Part shown: positions 4,590 to 18,772 of the stretch, piece after piece | How the letters are laid out: every line of letters starts with the position of its first letter | How positions within the stretch are numbered: the first letter of the stretch is position 1 | Origin: Rebecca billardiae RCC1528 | Taxonomy: Eukaryota; Protista; Haptophyta | DNA: 64,000 nt | Direction of reading: 5' to 3' | NCBI GenBank assembly: GCA_965240325.2 | Contig: OZ251231.1 | Coordinates: 2,547,988 to 2,611,987, forward strand | Made by a program: the position numbers and the translations under genes | The notes under the pieces: generated by a model | What the model was told of the DNA's origin: nothing | Database searches by the model: none | Seen by the model: only the letters and a program-made list of their open reading frames with translations

Positions 4590-5046
4590 CCAGCCGGCGG
4601 CCGCGCGAGGCGGCGCCGCCCTCGCAAAAGCGCGGCTCCGGCGTTGGGGCTCGGCGGTGGCGCGCACCCCTTGCTCGCGGCCGCCCGTCACGCGGTGAGG
4701 GCTCGGGCGGCCGCCCGCGGATCACGCCCATTTTGACGGCGAAGCAGGGCCGCGCGCATTTTTTATTCTTCGTCTGCTTTTCTAATTCGGACCCCCGATT
4801 GCCCGAGAGGAGAGGAGTCGCCAGTCGGGGCGGAGCCCGAGGTGTTTCGGTGCTGTCAATGTCACGGCGGTGACGGCGCTCGGCTCCGCGAGGACGATCA
4901 CGACTGCGTCCACGTGCCGCGTGCATGACAGCAACACGCAGGCTCCGATGGGCGGCTGGCCCTCCCACTGCCGCTCGCCGCCCCGCGCAGCTGGTGAGCC
5001 GTGCCACACGCGGCACGCGCCCTGCTCTGCCGCGTCGGAGCCAGGC

Positions 5047-6289
5047 TCAGTCGCGCCACTTGGTGCAGAGGGCGCCGATCGCAGTCAGGGCGACCGCACG
5101 CGCCCAGAGCGGCACGCCTGCGCCCGCGGCGATCCCGAGCAGATGGCGCAGCCCCATCGCGCCGTAGTAGAAGGCGAGCAGCGTGCCGAGCAGCCCCAGG
5201 TAGCACGCGTACTGCGTCGGCACTGGCAACGTCCTGCCGCGGGGGGCGCGGCACGCGGGCGGGTCGGCGCGCGCGCGCGTGCCCGCAGCTGAGTGCGCCT
5301 CGCTCGCGCGCTCCGCGCGGCTCAGCGCGGCGCAGCGCCGTGGCGCACCAGTCGAGGAAGAAGTATGGCTGCCACGCGCGCGCGCGCGCCGCGGGCGGGA
5401 GGGCGGGCGAGGGCGGGTGAGCCGGCGCCCCGCGTGGCGCGGCGCGCGCGCTCGGTGCGTGTGCGTGCGCGCACGGCCGCACGGCCGCACGGCCGCACGG
5501 CCGCACACGCACAAAGTTGCCGCCATTGCCCTTCCACTTGCCCACGCTGCCCGGCGCCGGCTGCTTGGCGAGCCGAGCGAGCTCGGGCGCGTGCGCCCAG
5601 GAGAAGCCGATGAAGGCGACCCCCCAGAGCATGCCGATCGCGGCGTGCTCGTACGAGAGCGGCAGCGCGCCGACGAGCAGCTCGGCCAGAATCTCGAAGA
5701 GGTTCATGTTGTGCATCGTCAGGTTCCACGGCTCGTGCAGGTCGTGCGGCGCGCGCTTGCGCACGAGCTCGGGCCAGATCACGTACGCGGTGACGACGCT
5801 GACGACGCAGCCGCAGCCCGCGGTCATCTCGAAGAGGTAGTGCGCCAGCCGCACCACCCCCGCGCCCGCCAGCCCGGGCCTGCCGAACGCCAGCGCCGCC
5901 GAGCAGAGCGCGCCGAGCGCGAAGAAGAGCCCCTGCGCCGAGTACGTCCAGATCGTGAAGAACGTGTACATGCGCTTTGCGCCGTGGAGGGAGAGCGTCT
6001 CGTCCTGCAGCAGCGAGCCCATGCCGCGGTTGTACTTGACGTTGAACTCGAAGGTGGGCAGGTTGTACATGTACGCCAGCATGCCCAGGTGGATGAGCGC
6101 AAAGCACGCGCGCAGGCCGAGCATCGTCACCGCCGACACCTCCGGCACGCTCGAGCCGCCGGCCTGCTCGAGCGTGAGCGGGATGGAGCGGTCGATCGCG
6201 AGGCACCACAGCGCGACGAGCACGAACACCACCGCGAGCGCCACGCACGCGAGCGGCGGCGCCGTCTGCGCCTGCGAGCGCGTCGCCAT
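5047..6289 (-). CDS. Multi-pass membrane protein, rolling stone (Rost)/FAR-17a-AIG1-like; exons 6289-5513, 5368-5349, 5233-5047
   Basis: Several hydrophobic helices; FFTIWT, LTMHNMN and PYFFLDW motifs; GT-AG introns keep the frame (GGNF|PYFFLDW|TLPVP). Confidence 0.7.
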
Positions 6290-6643
6290 CGGGCCAGCGA
6301 AGTTTCCGGAAAAGTCGCCCGCCGACCAGCGCGACCTGCTGCTCGTGGCGACGGCGGACGCGGCGCTCTCCGCGCTGCGCTCGGCCGAGCTCGGCGAGTC
6401 GCTCGCGCTCGGCCGGGCGGGCGGCGCGCACGACTGGAGAAATCGGCACCACACGTCTGGGCCCAGCGGCAGTGGCAGCTACCGGACCGGCCCTCCCAGC
6501 CGGAATATGCCTTGTCACTGGCCACCCGAGCGACCACAGCCACTGGCTTGCTCACTGGTCGCTCGGCTTACTGGTCGCCCGCGCTCGCCGGCGGGCGCGC
6601 GTCGTTCGAGTGGCGCTTCCCCTCCGAGCGTCGAGGCGAGGCG

Positions 6644-9566
6644 ATGGCGACGCGCGCGTCGGCTCGGGTGGAGGCGCGCGCCGCGCAGGCGGCGGACGAG
6701 TCCGACACCGCGAGCTCGGCCTCCTCGGCCGACGAGCACGAGGGCGCGGGCGCGCGCGGACGCGCGCGCGGGCCGCCGCGCTCGAGCGCGCGGCGGCGCA
6801 GCGGCGCGCGAGAGGCGGGCTCGGCGGGCGGCGCGGCGGCGGAGGAGAGCCCGGCGCGCGCGCAGCCGCCCGCCAAGCGCGCGCGCGGCGCCGATCCCGC
6901 GCCCGCGCCGCCTGAGCCGGCCGAGCCCGGCGCGGAGCGCTGGGGCATTCGGCCGGGCGTGGCGGTCGAGGTGCGCATGAGCGACGAGGGGTGGGAGGGC
7001 AGCTGGTACGCGGCGACGGTGCTCGGCTCGCGCGGCGCGCGCGTGCGCATCAAGTGGGATGCCGCCAGCCACCCCGACGACGAGGAGGAGGCGATGGTCG
7101 ACGCGCCCGCGCTGCGGCCCGTGCAGCCGAGCGCGCCCGCAGACTTTGCGCGAGCGCTCGCGCCCGGCGCGCGCGTCGAGCTGCGGCACGACGAGGGCTG
7201 GTGGGAGGTGGACGTGCTGAGCGCGGGGCGGCGCAGCTACACCGTCAGCTCCGAGCTGTACGGCGTGACGCACGAGCACGTCGACCCGCGCCGGCTGCGC
7301 CCGCGCTGGGTGTGGGAGCCGCAAGGCGGGCACGCGCGCGAGGGCTGCTGGCGCGACGCGTCCGAGCCGGCCAACAAGTACAAGCGCGACGGCACCGAGC
7401 TCGGCCCGCCGCCGCCGCCGCCGGGCGCGGCGGGCGCGGCGGGCGCGCAGCAGGGGCTGCCGCACGCCGCGTCCGCGGGCGCCGCCACGCGCCGCGCGAG
7501 CGCGCCGCCCGCGCCCTCGGCGGCGGGCGGCGCGCAGCTCGGCGCCGCGCGCGCCGCGCTCGAGAGTGCGCACGCGGCGCTGGCTGCATACCGCCCGCCG
7601 TCGGCGCGCGCGAACGCGTTCCAGGAGGGCACGCTGCGCACGGGCGAGGACGGCGCGAGCTGGGAGGTCGCCATCGCGGACAACGGCTCGAGCGTCTGGG
7701 CCCTCGAGGGCGACGTGCCGCGCTTCCTCGCGCTGCACAACGCGCTGCACGCCAAGAGCGCGGCGGTGCGCAGGCTCGAGCGCGCGCTGCCGAGCGCTGG
7801 CGCGGGCGGCGGCGGCGGGGGCGGCGGGGGGCGCGGGGAGCGGAGCGCGGCGGCGGCGGAGGCGGAGGCCGCCGCCGAGGCCGCCGACGCCGAGCAGCGC
7901 TACGCCGACGCCCTCGCCGCGTGGCGCTCCGAGCTGGAGGGCCGCGTGGAGAGCGAGCTGCGCGCGCTGTGCGAGCAGGCGCGCGCGCGCTCGGGCGCGG
8001 AGCGCCGCCGTCTCAACGACGAGCTCGAGACGTCGGCGGCGTGGGAGTTCGAGTACGTCGGCGTGCGCCGCGCGCCGACGGACCTCGACGCGCCGACCTC
8101 GCGCGCCGAGCAGTACGAGGCCGTGCTCGACGACGGCACCTCCGCCGGGCTCGCGCCGACCGCGCGCGACGCCGCGCTCCGCCGCCACTTCCACGCGGCC
8201 GCGCACGCCGCCGCGCGCGCCGCGCTGCCGCAGCCCGACCGCGAGGGCGTGGAGGCGCGGCACGCGGAGCGGGAGGGGCCGGCCCGCCGCGCGGCGCGCA
8301 AGTACGCGTACGACGACGACGACGACGACGACGACGACTACTCGGAGAACATGTGGACCAAGCGGAAGGGCGGCGGCGGCTCGGGCGTGCGCACGCGCCG
8401 GTGCAACGCTTGCGCGGGCTGCACGCGCGACAACTGCGGCAAGTGCGCGCACTGCCTCAACATGGTGCAGTACGGCGGCAGCGGCCGGTCGAAGCAGGCG
8501 TGCAAGCTGCGCAAGTGCCAGAACCCCTTCCTCCCCGACGACGCCGACGCCGCCGCCGCCGCCGCCAAGGCTCGGCGCGCGGGCGCGGGCGAGGAGGAGG
8601 AGGCACCAGACCGCTGGGGGCTCGGCCTCTCAGCGTATGGCCTCCCGGACTGCGAGATCCCGCAGCGTCCGGTGCGCGTGCGGCTGCTGGTGCGCGACCC
8701 GGAGGGCGGCGTGCTCGTCGAGGCGCCCGCGCCCGAGGGCTGGAGGCCCGGCGGCGGCGGCCGGCTCGACGCGCCCGCCGCCGAGGGCGGCGCGTCGGGC
8801 GCGCCGCGCGCGGCCGCGCCGCTCGGCGACGCGGACGCCGAGGCGGCCGCGCCGATGGAGCTGGCCGACGAGCCGCCCGCCGAGGCGGCGGCGGTGCTGA
8901 AGGCGGAGCCGCCCGCCGACGCGCCCTCGCCGATGGAGACGGAGCCGCCCGCCGACGCGCCCTCGCCGATGGAGTCGGAGCCGCCCGCCGGCGCGCCGCC
9001 AGCGCGCGCGGCCGAGCCGGCGGCCGCGCCAGAGGGCGGCGCGCGGACCGCGGCGCACGAGGCCGCGCCCCCGCCCGCCGCCGCCGCGGCGGCGCCCGCG
9101 CAGCCGCCCGCCGCCGCGGCGCGCGCGCCGGCGGACGCGGACGCGCCCGCGCGCCGCGCCGCGGCCGAGCCGAGCGCTGCGGAGGGCGCGCCCTCGCTGG
9201 AGGCCACAGCCGGGGCCGCGGCGGCCGGGGCCGCAGCGGGTGCAGAGCTGGCGGAGGTGACACCGGAGGTGACGCCGCCGCTCGCGCAGCGCCCCGCCGC
9301 GCCGATGCGCACGCCGAGCGCGCCCACCGCCGCCTCCGCCGCCGAGCCGCCCGCCGCCGAGCCGCCCGCCGCGGCGACGGCTCTTGCGCCCGGCGCCGCC
9401 GCGCCGCCGGCGTCGGCGCGCGCCGCGCCGCCCGCCGCGGCCGACAAGGGCGAGGGCGAGGGCGAGGGCGCTCCGCTCGCGGCGCTCGCGCCCACGCCCG
9501 CGCCGCGCCGCTCCGCGCGCGCCGCCGCCGCCAGTGCCGCCGCCGCCTCGCCGCCCGCCGCGGACG

Positions 9567-9616
<50 letters not shown>

Positions 9617-10499
9617 GCGCCCGCGCCGCCGCTCCCCGCGTGGGCGCCGCGCACGCTGGACGGAGTGGAGGTGCGCATGAGCGGCGAGGGCCAGCACGGC
9701 TCGTGGTACGCGGCCACGGTGCTGCACGTGCGCGGCGGCCGCGCGCGCGTGCGCTACGCCGAGCTGCGCGAGGAGTACGACGCGAAGCGGCTGCAGGAGG
9801 CGTGGGTGGACGTGGCCGAGCTAAGGCCCACGCCGCCGAGCGCGCCGCCCGGCTGGGTGCGCGAGCTCCGCGTCGGCGCGCCGCTCGAGCTGCGCGTGCT
9901 CGACGGCTGGTGGGAGGTCGACCTGGTGCGCACCGCGCGCACGCGCGCGGGCCGCGGCCCGAGCTACACGCTCGTCGCGCCGCTGTACGGCATCGTGCAC
10001 GCGGACGTGCCGGCGGCGCGGCTGCGGCCCGCGTGGCTCTTTGAGCCTGCGCGCCCGCCGTGGGGCGCGCTCTGGACGCTCGCCTCCTCCGGCCAGCGGT
10101 ACACGTGGCGCGGGGACGAGCTGCCGCGCGCGGAGCCGCTGAGCGGGCCCGCGGCGCGCGGCCGCGCGCCGAGCGCCGGCCCGAGCGGCTCGCGCCCCGC
10201 CGACGCCTCGGGCTCGGAGGGCGGCGGCAGCGGCAGCTCGTCGGAGGACGAGGGCATGGCCGTGCTGCGAGCGCTCGCGGGCGCGCGCGCGCGCGGCGGC
10301 GCGCACGACGCCGGCGCCGAGGCGGACGGCGAGGAGGAGGCGGGGGACGCGGAGGCGGACGCGTGCGCCGTGTGCGCCGCGCGCCGGGCCAAGAAGCGCG
10401 GCCGGTGCGCGCGCCACCGCGCCGCGACGACCATCACGCTCGGCGGCGCGCGCCGCGGCGAGGGCGGCGCGTCAGAGGCGGGGCGCTCCGCCGGCCGCT

Positions 10500-10548
<49 letters not shown>

Positions 10549-11764
10549 GGCGGAGCGCGTCGCGGCGGAGCGCGCGGCGCGTCGGCGCGCGCGGCTGCTG
10601 CAGCTGCCGCCCACCTGCGTGCTCGACCGCGTCGTCACCCCGCGCGACTTCCTGTACGACCAGGTGGTCGAGTCGGCGCGCTCCTCCACGGGCTACCGCG
10701 GCGTGTACGGCCACCTGTCCGAGGACGGCCGCTCCGTCAAGTACTACGAGGCGCAGGTGAGCGTGCGCGGCGCGTCGCTCGCGGTCGGGCGCGCGCAGAG
10801 CGCGCACGAGGCCGCGCTGCTGCGCGCCGAGTGGATCGCCGGGCTCGAGACCGTCGGCGGGCTGCCGCGCGTCGGCGGCAAGGCGGAGCGCGACGCCCTC
10901 ACCGAGCAGCCCGCGCGCGCGTCCAAGCGCGAGCGCAAGGCCACGCGCGCGCCCGCCTCGCCCTCCTCCTCCGAGGCGTCGTCGTCCGAGTCGGAGGTGG
11001 AGCTGCAGATCGGCGACCTCGTCGAGGTGCGCGTGCAGGACGAGGGCTTCGAGGGCAGCTGGTACGGCGCCACCATCGCGCGGCTCGACGGGCTGCGCGC
11101 GCTCGTGCGGTACACACACCTGATGGAGGCGGACGGATCGGAGGTGCCGCTCGAGGAGTGGATCGTGCTGCCGCACCTGAGGCCGCCGCCGCCGAAGCGC
11201 CACCCGCCGGGCTTCCCCGAGAGCGTCGCGCCGCGCGAGGCGCTCGAGCTCTGGCACGACGACGGCTGGTGGGCGGTGCAGAAGGTCGAGGAGCCCGCGG
11301 ACGAGCTGGCGGCGGGCGCGGCGCGCGCCGCGGCCGCGGCCGCGCCCGCCGCCGACGCGGCGGCGCCCGCCGACGCCGACGTGCCCCGCTACCTGGTGCG
11401 CGCGCTCAACTTCAAGGCAGAGCACCGCGCGCGCGCGGACGAGCTGCGCCCGATGTGGCAGTGGCTCGGCGGGCACGAGTGGAAGGTGCTGCGCCACCAG
11501 CCCAGGCGCAAGTCGATGCTGCTCGGCGGCACCGCGCTCGCGCGCGCCGCCGAGAGCGTGTACGGAGCGGCGGGCGCGCGCGACTCGATCGGCGCGGGCG
11601 GCAAGGTCGCGCTGGCCGCGGTCGAGGCGCTCGGCACGCCCGCCGCGTGGGAGGTCGGCGCGTTCGCCGAGGTGGCCTTCGAGGTGGTCACGTTCCTCTG
11701 CCGCCGCCGCGAGCTGTGCGCCGCGCTGCGCGCGCGCCGCGCGCACCGCCTCGCCAACGCCGCC

Positions 11765-11795
<31 letters not shown>

Positions 11796-14115
11796 ACGCC
11801 GCGCCCGCGGCGGACGCGGCGGCACCCGCGGCCGCGGCCGCGCCCGCGGCCGCCGAGGCCGAGGCGAAGGACGTGGGCGCCGCGAGCGCGAGCGCGGCGA
11901 GCGAGCTCGCCGTGCCCTTCCAGCCGATCGCGCTGCCGCCCGCGCTGCCGCCCGCGCGCGGGCTCGTCTGCTTCGACGCGGGCGGCGCGTCCTCGCGCGG
12001 AGGCGGCAAGGCGGCCGCGGCCGCGGCCGCCGCCGCGACGGTCGCCGCGGCGGCGGCCGCGCTCGCGCACGCGCCGCCGCCGAGCGCCGAGCCGCCGGCG
12101 GCCCCGCCGCCGCCGCCGCCCCACGCCGCGCCGCCGCCGCCCCACCAGATCAACCTCGTCGTGCCCGCGGGCAAGGGCCCGGGCGACGTGCTGGCGGTGA
12201 GCACGCCCGCGGGCGGGATGGTGCACGTGCGGCTGCCGGCGGGCGTGGCCGCGGGCCAGCTGTGCCGCTTCGATCTGCCCGTGCAGCGGCCGCACGGCGG
12301 GTGGCAGCCGGCGGCTGCGGCGCAGCACGCGCCGCCGCCGCAGCACGCGCCGCAGCACGCGGGGCACGCGTGCGCGCAGCCGCAGCTGCGCGCGCAGCAC
12401 GCGCCGGGCGCGGGCGCGCAGCAGCACGCGCCGCCCGTGCACACGGCGCCGCACGGCGCGTGGCCGCCGATGGCGCCGCCCTACTCGCAGCCGCCGCCGC
12501 AGCAGATGATGGCGCACGGGCAGATGGTGCCGACGCAGGCGCAGCCCATGCAGCCCATGCAGCCCATGCAGCCCATGCAGCCCATGCAGCCCATGCAGCC
12601 CATGCAGCCCATGCAGCTGCCGCCGCCGCCGGGCGGCGGCGCCGTCGTCGCGCCGGGCGCGCCTGGCCGGGGCGGCGGCGCGCCCCCGCCCTACCACCCG
12701 CCGCCGCCGTCCAGCGGCGACGGCGGCGGCATGGCGGTCGGCGACGGGCTCGCTCGGCCGGGCGCGCCGCTCGGCCCGTCGCAGCACGCGCCGCCGCCCG
12801 CGCCCGCGGCAGGCGCGGCGGCCGCGCCGCCCGCGCCGCCGCCCGCCGCGCCCGCGCCCGCAACCGACGCCTACCCAAACCCCGCGAGCGCCGAGTTGCG
12901 CCACGGCGCGCTCGTGCGCGCGCTCGCCGAGCTCGGCCCGCACGAGGCGGTGCGGCTCGCCGTCTCCAGCCCGATGCCGCAGCCGGGCCACGGCAGCGGC
13001 GGCAAGTGGGCGCGCGGCGCCGAGCTGGTCGTGGCCAAGAACCACTTCAGCGTGCTCACCAACCTGACGGAGGGCGGGCCGTACGGCACGGCGACGCTGC
13101 TGGTCGAGCACGCGGGCACGCGCGCGCTGCACGTGCTGCGGCTGGCGCAGGGCGTGCCCGTCGGGCTGGGCTTCGCGATGGCGGCGCACGCCGCGGCGCG
13201 GCTGCGCGCCCTCGCGCCCGAGCTCGGCGCGGAGTGCGCCGAGCACGGCGCGGTGCGCGTGCCCTCGCGCCTCGTCTGCTTCCACAACGGGTACGGCTCG
13301 CTCGCACCGTACAGGCAGTGCGTCACGCTGGCCGAGCTGAACGCCGCCTTCTCCGAGTCGCACCGCCGCGTGGACGAGGTGCTCACGATGGCGTACACCG
13401 TCGAGCTCCTCCGCCTCGTCGAGCAGCTGCACCGCGCGGGCGTGGTGCACGGCCAGCTCGCGGCCGAGCACGTGCTGCTCACGATGGCGGAGGGCGCGGA
13501 CGAGGAGGGCGCGGAGGGCGAGGCGGAGGGGCGGGCGCCGCACCGCGCGGCGGCGGCGGCGAGCGTGGAGCCGCCGCCCGTGAAGCGGCGCGGCCCGGGC
13601 CGGCCCAAGAACAGCGAGCTCGCCGTCGAGCTCGCCGCGAAGGCGGCGGCCGCGGCCGAGCGCGCGGAGGCCGCGCCAGCCCCGGAGCCGGGCTCCTACA
13701 AGCCGCGCGTGCGCCTGCAGCTGATCGGCACGTCCAAGGCCCTCGACCTCAAGCAGCACCCACACGTGTGCGCAACAGCCGCGCACCGCGCGCACCGCGC
13801 GCACCGCACGCACCGCACGCGCGGCTCTGAGCGCGCGCCGCCCTGCCCCGCGCGCGCGCGCCGCGCTTGCTTCGCCTCGTTGCGCGCGCTGTGCGCCGCA
13901 GGGCGTGCTCTTCAAGCTGCCGCCCGTGCACCCGAAGGAGGCGCGGTGCGTGGAGCAGCTGGACGGCAGCCCGTGGTCGTGGCACGTGGACACGTTCGGG
14001 CTGTGCTCGGTCGTGCACATGCTGCTGTTCAACGAGCCGCTCAACCTCGAGCTGGTGAGACGCGCGGCAGCGCACCCGTGTGTGCGCGCGCGCGTGTGCG
14101 TGTGCGTGTGTGCGC

Positions 14116-14146
<31 letters not shown>

Positions 14147-15658
14147 TGTGCGTGTGCGTGTGCGTGCGTGTGCGTGCGCGTGCGTGCGCGTGTGTGTGTG
14201 TGTGTGTGCGTGTGCGTGTGCATGCGTGCGTGTGCGTGTGTGTGCGTGTGCGTGCGTGTGCGTGCGCGTGTGTGCGCGCGCAGGCGGGGGCCGGGGCGCG
14301 CGTCTCGGGGACGCCAGTGCGCGCTTGTGACAGCGCGCGTGCCTCTGACGCCCGCACGCGCCCACGCGCGGCGCGCGCTCGCGCCCGGCTGCGCGCCAGG
14401 CGATGGCCGACCTGAAGAAGGTGCACGCCGAGAAGGAGAAGGAGCAGCGGCTGCAGCGCAAGGCTGCCAAGCTCGCGGCGGCGGGCGGCAGCGGCGCGGC
14501 CGCGCCCGCCGCCGCGCCCGCCGCCGCCGCGGCGGACGGCGGCGCGCAGCCGGCCGCGCCTGCCGCCGCCCCGTCCGAGCCCGCGCCCGCTGCCGAGTCC
14601 GAGCAGCCCGCCCTCTCCGCGTACGAGCAGGCGCGCCGGGAGACGATGGAGCGCAACCGCCAGATGATGGAGCAGCTGGGGCTGCTCAAGGTGCGGAGTG
14701 CGCACGCGCCGCGCTGCCCGGCACGCAGCGGCAAGCGAGCGCACGGCGGGCGGGCCGGCGCCGAGGGCCGGCGGCCGAGGGCCTTCGCCGCTCACGCCAG
14801 CGCGCGCGCCCCTCCCCCGCCCCGTCCCTGCGCCCCCGCCGCCCCGCGCGCGCAGGCGGCCAAGGAGGTGAAGGAGAACGGCGGCGCGGAGCACGCGCCC
14901 GCGCAGCGCAAGCGCGGCCGTCCGCGCAAGAGCGACGCGCCGCGCGACGAGGAGGAGGAGCTGGACGAGGGCGCGGAGGAGCGGCGCAAGAAGCGGCTGC
15001 TGCAGCGCTCCTCTGTGGGCGAGGACGGCATCTGGCGGCCGCACTTGCCGCTCAAGCGGTGCGCACCGGCCCCGCGCGCTGCGGCCTCGCGCGCGCGCGA
15101 GTGGCTGTGGCTGTGGCTGGGTTGGGACGCCGGCCAGCTGAGCGCGAGGCGCGCGGCCGCCCTCCTCGCGCCCCGCCCCGCCCGCCGTGACCGAGCAGGT
15201 ACTGGCAGGTCGAGCTGTGGCAGTCGCTCTTCTCGCGGCTGATCCACGTGCCGCCCGGGCAGCCGTGCCCCGCGCTCGCGCAGATCCGAGCCGAGTTCGA
15301 GGCGCACCTGGCCGCGCCCGCGCAGCAGGCAGAGCTGCGCTCCGCGCTCGCGCGGCAGCGCTCGGTGATCGACTCGCGCGCGGAGCGCTCGCAGCGGCTG
15401 CTGCTCAACCGCAAGATCCACGTCGACGCGCTGCGCAAGGCGCTCGCCGCCGTCGCGGCCGACATCGTGCCCAACCCGGTCGAGCAGCCGGCCGCAGAGC
15501 CCGAGCTGCGCGTGCCGGTGGGCGTGGTGCAGGAGGCGCTCGTCGAGATCTTTGGCGAGTGCGCGGAGGCCGAGCTGGTGGGCGCGCTCAACAAGGCGGT
15601 GCACACGGGCAAGCTGAGCGTCGCGGGCGGCGACTTCCAGCCCGCGCTGCTCCAGTGA
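6644..15658 (+). CDS. Giant chromatin protein: 3 tandem Agenet/Tudor pairs, zf-CXXC, AP2-like domain, AT-hooks, C-terminal Bub1-like pseudokinase; exons 6644-13765, 13902-14054, 14400-14690, 14856-15058, 15199-15658
   Basis: [19 protein letters not shown]...DEGWWEV-type motif three times; [39 protein letters not shown]; GYRGVY...YYEAQV...AHEAALLR; KRRGPGRPK and RKRGRPRK; all four introns GT-AG and frame-consistent. Confidence 0.8.
12542..12613 (+). repeat. Coding 9-bp tandem repeat (CAGCCCATG)x8 encoding (QPM)8
   Basis: Directly visible perfect repeat. Confidence 0.95.
14077..14280. repeat. Intronic (GT)n/(GC)n alternating purine-pyrimidine microsatellite
   Basis: About 200 bp of gtgtgt/gcgcgc inside intron 14055-14399. 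Confidence 0.95.
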
Positions 15659-16009: not shown

Positions 16010-16264
16010 TTACTGCTGCTTGCAGTCCGCCGCAGGCGCCGCGGTGGTCGGAGGCAGCGCCACTGGCTTGGCTTTGGGCGCCGCACCTGCGCCTGTCGCG
16101 TGACGCAGCGCCGTACAGTGCGGGGCAGCGCAGGTCAGATGCATGGGCGTGCGCAGCCCTGCGGCCGCGCGCAGCCATGCACTCTGCGCGGGGTGGGCGC
16201 GCGCGCTCTGGTTGCAGCAGGCGCACACGCACCTGGCTTTCCTCTCGCCTTCCCGCGCGGCGGG

Positions 16265-16354
<90 letters not shown>

Positions 16355-17805
16355 TCGTCCTCGTCGTCCTCGTCATCGTAGTCCTCGTCTGAGTCCGAGT
16401 CCTCGGCCTCGCCTGCAGCAGCGCGGCGCGCGAGCACACGCACATGCACACGCGCGCGTGTTGGGGGGGGCAGGTGGCCGTGTCAGCTGGGAACGCGCCG
16501 CGCGCCGCGCGCGCCCGTCCGCGCGCGCGCGCGCTGCACCCGCCCCGCCCCGCGCGCACCCGTGTACCACTGCACCGCGTTCGGTATGAGCTTGTCCTTG
16601 TACGCCTGCGCCATCTCGTAGTCGCCCTCGAGCGCGTCCTGCAGCGCCTCCGCCTCCATCTCGTCCAGCTCCGCGTCGTCGTCGGGCACCTCGGGCGGGG
16701 AGAAGAAAGTGAACCACGAGTCGAGCGGCTCGTTGACCGTGATCGTGCGCTCCTTCCCCTTCTTCTTCTGCTTCTTCGTCACGGTGCGCTTCGTCACGTC
16801 CTTGCCCGGCTTCCAGTGGATCTCGCAGCCGAGCACGTTGTCGAGCGTGTCCTCGTCCTCCTCGTCCATCACGTACGTCTTGCTCAGCGTGCCGTTCGAG
16901 AAGTACTCGTTGGGGGAGAACTCGAAGAGCAGCCGGAAGCCCTCGCGCCCGGGGTGCTCGGGCAGCTCGTTCGAGAGCGACACGTCGACGAGGTGCTTGA
17001 GGATCGGCGCGTCGGGCGGCATGATCTCGCGCTCGAGCATCCGGTGGTTCATCATCGCACTCAGCCAAAAGTGCGGGATGCCCGAGCCGCCCGCCGGGTC
17101 GCCCTCGACGGCGGTCGCGCCGGAGACGATGCCCTTGCGCTCGGCGGCGAGCGGCCCCGTGCGCGCCTGGTACTCGCGCTCGATCTCCTTCCGCTTGCGC
17201 TCGTACTCCGCCTTGGCCTCGTCCTGCTGCTGCTGCAGTGCCCGCAGCGCCTTGAGCCGCGCCTGCTCCGCCGCGCTCGTGCCGCCGCTCACGGTGAGCG
17301 CGCCGAGCTGCGCGCCCACGCCGGCGGTGCCGCCGCCGCCGCCACCGCCGCCCTTCGCGCCCTCGCCCTTCGCGCCGCGCGCCGCGTTGCGCCGCGGCTT
17401 GCCCTCGTCGTCGTCGTCCGCGTCGGCGGGCGGCGCGCCGACGTCAAAGTTGAACTTGAAGTTGGTCGGCGCGCCCGCGCCCGCGGCGAAGAGGTTGGCG
17501 GTGTCGCCGGCCGGGGTGAAGCTGAACTGCGCGTTGGAGCCGGCCGCCGCGCTGCCCGCCGGCTTGGGTTGCGGCGCGCCGCCGCCCGCCGTGCCCGGCT
17601 CGCTCGGCGCGGCGGACGCGCCGGTCGCCTGCTGGAACGCCTTGGCGATCGTGACGACCTGGTCCTTGGTGAGCTTCTCCCACGGCTTGGCGCTGCCGAT
17701 GCGGTGTTGCTCGACGAACTCGGGCGGGGCGACGGCCTGCATGTGCTGTATCAGCTGCTTCTTGCTATACCCATCGAGCTGCGCGTCGGTCGCGGGGGTG
17801 CTCAT
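16010..17805 (-). CDS. NAP1: Nucleosome assembly protein 1 (NAP family histone chaperone); exons 17805-16560, 16412-16233, 16092-16010
   Basis: GIPHFWLSAM, FEFSPNEYFSNGTLSKTY, GCEIHWKPGKDVT, SWFTFFSPP, KDKLIPNAVQWYTG; poly-Asp tail; terminal CKQQ. Confidence 0.93.
16266..16357 (-). repeat. (GAC)n trinucleotide repeat encoding the NAP1 poly-Asp tail
   Basis: About 30 near-perfect gtc units on the + strand. Confidence 0.95.
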
Positions 17806-17950
17806 GGCTGCCTCGGCGCGGCCTGACGCGTGCCCAGTCGGTCCTGTTTTGGCGCGTGAGCGTCGCGCGCGCCGGCGCGCGCTGGCTCCCTGGCCGGCCG
17901 CTTTCGTGAGTTGGGGAGAGTGACGGCCGCCGACGGACGCGCGCGTGACG
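17806..17950. promoter_or_regulatory. Putative compact bidirectional promoter (NAP1 / methyltransferase)
   Basis: Only 145 bp between divergent start codons. Confidence 0.55.
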
Positions 17951-18772
17951 ATGGACGCGGCACAAACGCCGTCGAGCGGAGAGTGGGTCGCCGTGGGCAT
18001 CGGTGGCGCGGTGTTGGCGGCCCTGGGCATGCTACGCTTCGTCCCGAGCGTGCGTCACCTCGTCTTCGCGCGCCTGTGGTCGGATGGGGGCGCCTCGGCG
18101 CGGATGGACGAGGCGACGCGCGAGGCGAAGCGCGAGCTCCTCTCGCACCCGCCTCTCTTTGGGCGCGTGCTCGACCTCGGGACGGGGGACGGGCACAACA
18201 TCAAGTACCTGTGCGGCGTGGCGGCCCCCGATGTGCGCGAGCTCGTGTGCGTCGAGCCCAATCGCTACCTGCAGGAGCGGCTGCGCACGGCAGCGGCGGC
18301 GGCGCAAGAGGAGGCCGCAGACGCTGGGATCGAGCTGCGGGTGAGCGTGTTCGAGGGGACGCTCGAGGAGTACGAGGCGCACGCGGGCAAGGACGGCGTC
18401 GGCTCGTTCGATACGATCACGTGCCTGCTCGTCCTCTGCTCCGTGCCCGACGTCCGCGAGGCGCTCGCCTCGTGCGCGCGCCTGCTCCGGCGCGCCGAGC
18501 GCTCGCGTCTGCTGTACCTCGAGCACGTGTGCGCGCTCTCCCTGCCCGCGCGCACGCTGCAGCGCGCGGTGCAGCCCGCGTGGGACTTTGTGGGCGACGG
18601 CTGCCAGCTGTGCCGCGATACCCTCGGCGAGATGGCGCGCGTCGGAGCCTCGACTGGCGCGTGGGAGGTGACGACGTGCAAGCGCGAGCTGCGCTTTGTC
18701 GGCGGGCTGGTGCCGGTCGTGCACGGCAGCTGCACGTGCCCCGGGCCCAGCCCGGCCGGCCGCCGCGCGTGA
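17951..18772 (+). CDS. Class I SAM-dependent methyltransferase, METTL7/TMT1-like, with N-terminal membrane anchor
   Basis: VLDLGTGDG motif I, CVEPN, SFDTITCLLVLCSVPD, YLEHV, GDGCQLCRD. Confidence 0.88.
   Translation: MDAAQTPSSGEWVAVGIGGAVLAALGMLRFVPSVRHLVFARLWSDGGASARMDEATREAKRELLSHPPLFGRVLDLGTGDGHNIKYLCGVAAPDVRELVCVEPNRYLQERLRTAAAAAQEEAADAGIELRVSVFEGTLEEYEAHAGKDGVGSFDTITCLLVLCSVPDVREALASCARLLRRAERSRLLYLEHVCALSLPARTLQRAVQPAWDFVGDGCQLCRDTLGEMARVGASTGAWEVTTCKRELRFVGGLVPVVHGSCTCPGPSPAGRRA

Follow-up and report, generated by a model that had tools for sequence, protein, structure and literature searches.

To our knowledge, kinase domains of the Bub1 family are found almost exclusively at the C-terminal end of MadBub proteins, which serve the spindle checkpoint, and the dead versions of the domain, BubR1 and KKT14, still work at kinetochores. 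We likewise know of no Agenet or CXXC chromatin reader with a kinase-like domain. Here we describe a gene of the haptophyte Rebecca billardiae RCC1528 in which these elements are very likely joined. Within a stretch of 64,000 nucleotides of contig OZ251231.1 (assembly GCA_965240325.2, positions 2,547,988 to 2,611,987; called the window below, and the source of all coordinates given without a prefix), a five-exon gene on the + strand at 6644-15658 very probably encodes a 2,742-residue chromatin-associated protein composed of reader modules and a dead Bub1/BubR1-family kinase domain. For this gene we establish the exon structure, the family of the kinase domain and the loss of its catalytic residues. 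BubR1 keeps most residues of the catalytic motifs, whereas the window protein has lost all of them.

The closest described system is Bub1 itself, as known from human BUB1 (4R8Q, 4QPM, 5DMZ) and the MadBub family. In electrophoretic mobility shift assays the human kinase domain associates with DNA and with nucleosomes, nucleosomal H2A is its preferred substrate, and phosphorylation of H2A requires L875 and N879 in alphaD and G1001 and Y1003 in alphaF (PMC4675524). The window protein shares with Bub1 a colinear fold, the motif of the P+1 loop and alphaF, the C-terminal KRYWQxELWxxLF helix and the equivalents of L875 and N879, and the significant sequence and predicted-fold matches of its domain, or of the orthologous domain, are confined to the Bub1 family. 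Unlike Bub1, it has lost the equivalents of G1001 and Y1003 together with the catalytic residues, carries two large inserts with AT-hook-like sequences and an additional conserved tail of about 100 residues, and has Agenet and CXXC modules upstream; no tetratricopeptide repeat (TPR) or GLEBS motif was found in it, and its lone KEN and ABBA-like matches have no counterpart in the orthologue.

Two further systems bear comparison. Vertebrate BubR1 also retains a Bub1-family kinase fold without catalysis (PMC4675524; PMC5204127) but, unlike the window protein, preserves the MadBub architecture of TPR, KEN and GLEBS, where the window protein has a chromatin-reader N-terminus. Kinetoplastid KKT14 has been described as a divergent orthologue of Bub1/BubR1, with its likeness to Bub1 in a C-terminal pseudokinase domain (PMC11286163); as in the window protein, this is a divergent pseudokinase, structurally nearest to Bub1, outside the usual MadBub architecture. 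KKT14 is described with an ABBA motif and as a partner of the Bub3-like KKT15 at kinetochores, whereas the window protein has no conserved ABBA motif and has Agenet, CXXC and AT-hook elements as partners of its kinase fold. With the Agenet and CXXC readers (plant Agenet-domain proteins; CXXC proteins of the CFP1/KDM2/MLL type) it shares Pfam-significant modules, the eight cysteines and the KQ motif. We found no earlier description of histone- and DNA-reading modules combined with a dead Bub1-family kinase in one haptophyte gene; a literature search returned no paper joining Agenet and Bub1 in one protein, and linked Bub1 with haptophytes only through a passing mention.

Gene model and splicing

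The GC content is 67-84% across most of the window. Because long open frames come cheaply at 80% GC, the length of an open reading frame (ORF) is poor coding evidence here, and codon-position composition was used instead. The gene is made up as follows.

6644-13765, + strand: exon 1 (2,374 codons, 7.1 kb), with the reader array, a low-complexity linker and the pseudokinase N-lobe up to the DFG-equivalent; GT donor at 13766
13902-14054, + strand: exon 2 (51 residues), with the end of the activation segment, the P+1 loop and alphaF (closing on MLLFNEP); the most conserved piece
14080-14270, strand not assigned: GT/GC-rich microsatellite that fills most of intron 2, by direct reading
14400-14690, + strand: exon 3, an insert between alphaF and alphaG with a conserved helix at its end; colinear with the orthologous transcript
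14856-15058, + strand: exon 4, with an AT-hook, an acidic stretch and then the segment where Bub1 likeness restarts
15199-15658, + strand: exon 5, with the Bub1-type C-terminal helices, the conserved tail of about 100 residues and the stop codon (15656-15658)

All four introns are of the GT-AG type, and a check of the junctions gave a spliced frame of 2,742 codons in which the only stop is the terminal one. With the introns removed, every Bub1-signature peptide quoted in the initial annotation was found at its place. Read in the frame set by the ATG at 6644, GC at third codon positions (GC3) is 0.94-1.0 in each 300-nt block over 6644-13765, and second positions have the lowest GC; at 90-nt resolution, GC3 of exon 1 is at least 0.83 in all bins, a single bin lying below 0.9. 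Furthermore, each 100-nt window within 6100-13900 has a GC content of at least 68%, and the value falls to 52-63% past the stop codon. The steady GC3 and the absence of a GC dip therefore place readers, linker and kinase N-lobe in one continuous coding frame. There is no room for a gene boundary between the reader array and the kinase N-lobe, in line with the initial annotation, which placed the kinase at the end of a chromatin-reader protein. The periodicity seen in exon 1 recurs in exons 3 and 4, each in its own phase, with a GC3 of 0.94 for exon 3 in the frame it uses.

The only close relative of the domain is in Pavlovales sp. CCMP2436. An exhaustive HMMER search with the tail of exon 1 gave 12 matches in total, the best of which was P0001, an ORF from an MMETSP transcript; P0013 and P0014, which belong to the same cluster, come from the JGI transcript contigs L002-L004. 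L002 agrees with the CCMP2436 genome at 100% identity over at least 12 exons. The spliced window protein aligns with L002 in a single frame over residues 2080-2736 (44% identity, E 1.45e-149), and the alignment crosses all four window junctions, with clear counterparts of exons 3 and 4; the splicing of exons 1 to 5 is thus backed by orthologous mRNA. Between the two species, identity is 55% in the N-terminal part of the domain (12881-13765), 71% in exon 2 and 55% in exon 5. Word-index protein searches with the kinase region and with the reader region, each within full exon 1, returned nothing, and no relatives turned up when metagenomes were scanned for peptides conserved in the pseudokinase clade.

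A Bub1-family kinase domain without its catalytic residues

The evidence strongly supports a Bub1/BubR1-family kinase fold. Searched against the PDB, exon 2 gave six matches, all of them Bub1 kinase domains (E 4.8e-6 to 1.8e-4), and the tail of exon 1 had Bub1/BubR1 6jkk as its best match, at the colinear position; at E<=0.01 there were only Bub1/BubR1 matches. For the orthologue P0013, Bub1/BubR1 structures were matched at 2.2e-15 to 2.3e-12 and the next kinase in the whole PDB at 0.34, a gap that here stands in for a rooted kinome tree. The named HMMER matches were a Salpingoeca BUB kinase (Mad3_BUB1_I by Pfam) and Balamuthia BUB1. In a local search with E-values scaled to 1.8e9 sequences, the spliced window domain matched Balamuthia BUB1 at E 2.6e-16 and more than 30 other Bub1 kinases at 1e-14 to 1e-6, in three colinear stretches. 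Additionally, when 22 Bub1 kinase domains, none of them from Pavlovales, were made into a profile, it scored 120.5 bits on the full window protein and at most 2.7 bits on 200 shuffled copies, so that the Bub1-type signatures reported initially withstood a profile check; the profile aligns residues 2205-2446 and 2580-2643.

Colinearity with Bub1 extends from alphaD/alphaE through the C-terminal KRYWQxELW helix. The family motifs CxE....PW..Q.D.FG (P+1 loop/alphaF) and KRYWQxELWxxLF (after alphaG) are present in the window and in CCMP2436, and the near-invariant positions of the full alignment belong to the cores of alphaE, alphaF and the C-terminal helices. The AlphaFold prediction for P0013, made from a 27-sequence alignment (predicted local distance difference test score, pLDDT, 69; predicted template modelling score, pTM, 0.61), has the strand-and-helix order of a kinase. 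Its top six Foldseek matches are all Bub1/BubR1 (E 3e-15 to 8e-11, template modelling score 0.64-0.71, about 460 columns), followed by generic kinases at 1.7e-8 over about 240 columns. In a language-model search the BUB1 cluster ranked second and had the most shared features. The outcome that would have told against the initial annotation, a grouping with another kinase family, was thus not obtained.

The part of the domain encoded by exon 1, and the active-site positions as compared with Bub1, are listed below.

12881-13765, + strand: first part of the pseudokinase, with an N-terminal extension, the N-lobe, alphaD/alphaE, the dead catalytic loop, an insert and the dead DFG
13124-13144, + strand: beta3, ALHVLRL, for Bub1 (V/A)(A/L)(I/L)K; in place of the Lys stand His here and Phe in CCMP2436 (ALFVLRL), with an Arg three residues on
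alphaC: WE(F/W) in active Bub1; no acid in the aligned column in the window or CCMP2436
13448-13471, + strand: catalytic loop, HGQLAAEH for Bub1 HGDxKxDN (Asp to Gln, Lys to Ala, Asn to His); HTQLTAEH in CCMP2436
13724-13735, + strand: DFG-equivalent, IGTS for Bub1 IDFG (Asp to Gly, Phe to Thr, Gly to Ser); LGLS in CCMP2436

The replaced catalytic loop and DFG had been read in the initial annotation exactly as listed. All six residues of an active kinase (beta3 Lys, alphaC Glu, the Asp of HGD, the Lys and Asn of the loop, and the DFG Asp) are lost in both species, and Thr stands in place of the first glycine of the Gly-rich loop. Judged by its residues, the domain is therefore expected to be a pseudokinase, unable to transfer phosphate by the canonical mechanism. 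As the losses are shared by the window species and CCMP2436, the inactivation is older than their split, after which both lineages retained the domain.

Two of the sequences encountered in these searches deserve mention in their own right. P0005, the Salpingoeca rosetta BUB kinase, is a TPR-bearing MadBub that reads AGNFQPEN, with NFA for DFG, and is thus an apparent Bub1-family pseudokinase. P0003 is a PDS5-domain protein of 2,179 residues whose middle consists of many tandem fragments of a kinase alphaE and catalytic loop; it looks like an oddity of assembly or annotation.

Reader modules, inserts and flanking sequences

Upstream of the kinase fold, the Agenet family PF05641 matches exon 1 at E 3.3e-41 overall, in four stretches and above the gathering score, and a CXXC finger is also above its gathering score. 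By analogy with known readers, the Agenet and CXXC modules would read histone marks and CpG DNA. The modules, the linker that follows them and the AT-hook-bearing elements within the kinase fold are these.

6959-7129, + strand: Agenet module 1, PF05641 E 1.4e-12, the best of two stretches in the 499-residue piece 6644-8140
8384-8518, + strand: zf-CXXC zinc finger, PF02008 E 1.7e-10 to 1.9e-11, with eight Cys and a YGG...KQ motif
9665-9838, + strand: Agenet module 2, PF05641 E 3e-12
10694-10850, + strand: candidate AP2-like segment (YRGVYG...), unconfirmed, suggested by a language-model lead and a low-confidence model
11012-11194, + strand: Agenet module 3, PF05641 E 2.2e-16
11564-12880, + strand: Ala/Pro/Gly/Gln-rich linker (residues 1641-2079), including QPM repeats; GC3 0.95-1.0 in the ORF frame
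13490-13700, + strand: insert of about 57 residues, in the window species only, between the catalytic loop and the DFG-equivalent, with the AT-hook-like RRGPGRPK (GRP at 13598-13606)
14910-14930, + strand: AT-hook KRGRPRK, Pfam AT_hook E 0.029, below threshold; KRGRPS conserved in CCMP2436

Of the three kinds of upstream module named in the initial annotation, Pfam thus recovers Agenet and CXXC, and the AP2 assignment is unconfirmed. The AP2-like segment had no Pfam match (PF00847) at E<=5 and no PDB match at E<=10; it drew a weak Atlas language-model lead (0.90 to a cluster with AP2 in 15% of its members), and its single-sequence model gives three strands followed by a helix at a pLDDT of only 46. 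Directly upstream of the CXXC finger, at 8310-8350, lie about nine consecutive Asp codons. In the linker, at 12540-12615, the tripeptide QPM is repeated about eight times, and the reverse strand reads as an ORF of MGC repeats. The two AT-hook-like GRP cores are both located in loops of the pseudokinase.

No Mad3/Bub1 TPR had been visible to the initial annotation, and the Pfam model Mad3_BUB1_I (PF08311) indeed finds none, at E<=1 in the 2,374 residues of exon 1 or at E<=5 in pieces of it; the same model reaches E 1.9e-34 on Salpingoeca Bub1. A regular-expression scan, which degenerate motifs can escape, returned one KEN (residue 2528) and one ABBA-like match (residue 2705), neither conserved in the orthologue, and a single loose GLEBS-like match. 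Beyond the kinase fold, the C-terminal tail (15335-15655, about 100 residues) shows 55% conservation with CCMP2436. Neither Pfam nor Atlas gave a match for it, and the helices predicted in it have low confidence.

The helix that closes the exon 3 insert, S-x-Y-E-x-A-R-R-E-x-M-E-x-N-R-x-M-M-E-x-L-G-L-L, is conserved between 14610-14690 and P0013:296-320 and adjoins the AT-hook. It has no family match; we take it to resemble a motif that lies near DNA-binding domains of plant proteins. The neighbouring gene at 16483-18030 on the - strand looks NAP1-like (a nucleosome assembly protein), with an acidic tail that comes from a GAC/GAT-rich repeat near 16200-16400.

Proposed function and alternative explanations

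The residues by which human Bub1 recognizes H2A were mapped through an alignment to 4R8Q, residue numbers being the chain index plus 720, an offset checked by Q972, L875 and N879. The equivalents of L875 and N879 are kept, in TLAELN of the window protein and TLGEIN of the orthologue. With two of the four H2A residues kept and two lost, the idea of a nucleosome reader is plausible but no more than half supported. In the scheme we propose, the three Agenet (Tudor-like) modules and the CXXC finger in the N-terminal two thirds would engage chromatin, and the dead domain beyond the linker would act there as a non-catalytic docking module. As its docking target we tentatively favour the nucleosome or the C-terminal tail of H2A, aided by the AT-hooks in the loops; a protein partner inherited from Bub1 is the alternative, to be held just as tentatively. 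The full proposal, that a Bub1 fold stripped of catalysis is reused as a nucleosome or H2A-tail reader in a multivalent Agenet, CXXC and AT-hook protein, is a speculative one that we consider rather doubtful. A role as a scaffold for protein partners, like that of BubR1 or KKT14 (PMC11286163), is equally possible.

Several observations weigh against this account of the gene and its function. In alphaF, the G-x-Y of G1001 and Y1003 is replaced by N-E-P (FNEP) in both species, which weakens the idea of docking to the H2A tail. The fold was predicted for the orthologue P0013 rather than for the window protein, and its mostly-Bub1 alignment may bias the model; the general kinase models of Pfam, and likewise those of NCBIfam, are sub-threshold on pieces of the window. 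The search for RNA runs of the window species found none, and those listed carry just 5-6% of the sampled words; these low-share runs include tick and viral metagenomes, and shares of this size in unrelated runs probably stem from the microsatellite of intron 2. The claim of a single transcript therefore rests on coding statistics together with orthologous mRNA.

In CCMP2436, moreover, the first 744 nt of the transcript code in a frame other than that of the kinase exons. Within L002:1-930, codon-position GC places this 5' part, a Pro/Gln/Glu-rich peptide, in frame 3 and the kinase exons in frame 2; the switch coincides with a genuine splice junction, whose AG acceptor is present in the genome, and L002, L003 and L004 carry the identical 744 nt. 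A splice choice that would restore the frame of the CCMP2436 transcript was looked for and none was found; the 5' part of L002 may represent an exon-skipped or mis-spliced isoform. The genomic locus (L001) is full of N runs, including one at 4712-8031 directly upstream of the first mapped exon, and, with the frame switch, this leaves conservation of the fusion in CCMP2436 unproven. Word-index protein searches, in which low-complexity words swamped the candidates, gave no long orthologue of the reader array.

The switch in frame is one of the points in favour of a two-gene explanation, in which the kinase exons form a separate, shorter transcript from an internal ATG and the long frame is an accident of 80% GC. 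In-frame ATGs do occur at 12731 and 12974, the MMETSP ORF call of the orthologue begins at an internal Met, and other frames are likewise open for more than 1,000 codons at such GC. On the other hand, GC3 stays at 0.95-1.0, GC2 (GC at second codon positions) is low and the frame is constant across 11444-12944, with no GC dip comparable to that past the stop at 15658. In CCMP2436, furthermore, splicing at an AG acceptor seen in the genome joins the first kinase exon to coding sequence upstream of it, so that there, too, the kinase exons do not form a 5' end of their own, and we regard two genes as improbable. Still less credible is that the Bub1 likeness arose by chance or convergence in a domain from another kinase family. 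The Pfam Kdo and Kinase-like matches, the only ones obtained and both sub-threshold, and the position of the N-lobe outside the Bub1-profile alignment could be cited for it, but Bub1 is separated from any other PDB kinase by at least 11 orders of magnitude, the Bub1-specific motifs KRYWQxELW and CxExxxxxPW are present and the top six fold matches are all Bub1/BubR1; this explanation is close to refuted.

A single protein with a Bub1-family domain can also be interpreted differently. It may be the lineage's divergent MadBub orthologue, and not an additional paralogue, acting at centromeres or kinetochores, with Agenet and CXXC in place of recruitment through TPR and KNL1 and with its pseudokinase as a scaffold. 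Non-catalytic Bub1-like pseudokinases are indeed known in BubR1 (PMC4675524) and in KKT14 (PMC11286163), and the catalytic motifs of the TPR-bearing Salpingoeca P0005 are degenerate too. Against such an orthologue stand the TPR, for which none was found, the lone KEN (residue 2528) and ABBA-like match (residue 2705) absent from the CCMP2436 orthologue, and the failure to recognise a GLEBS-like Bub3-binding motif, and we consider it unlikely. Retained catalysis by a non-canonical mechanism, for instance by binding nucleotide with another residue serving in catalysis, or by another kind of transfer, as in some former pseudokinases, is very improbable. We know of no precedent for it within the Bub1 family, and six of the six canonical positions are replaced together, among them the two that bind metal (Asn and the DFG Asp), although the glycine-rich loop partly survives (TEGGPYG), the beta3 Arg and the Glu-His of the catalytic loop are conserved in both species and the BubR1 pseudokinase retains nucleotide binding (PMC4675524).

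The preferred explanation remains one gene that couples chromatin readers to a dead Bub1-family domain. The retention of a fully dead Bub1 fold dates back to before two Pavlovales lineages separated, and in the window genome this fold is part of a protein with histone- and DNA-reading modules. Because Bub1 itself phosphorylates nucleosomal H2A, the fusion would offer a concrete example of how a kinase scaffold that binds its substrate becomes a module that binds chromatin; if the proposal is true, a histone kinase has here given rise to a new class of histone-binding modules. Alternatively, the gene may show a new, KNL1-independent route by which a Bub1-like scaffold reaches chromatin. With it, a haptophyte example joins the repeated losses of kinase activity in the Bub1 family, and the gene bears on the evolution of kinetochores and chromatin.

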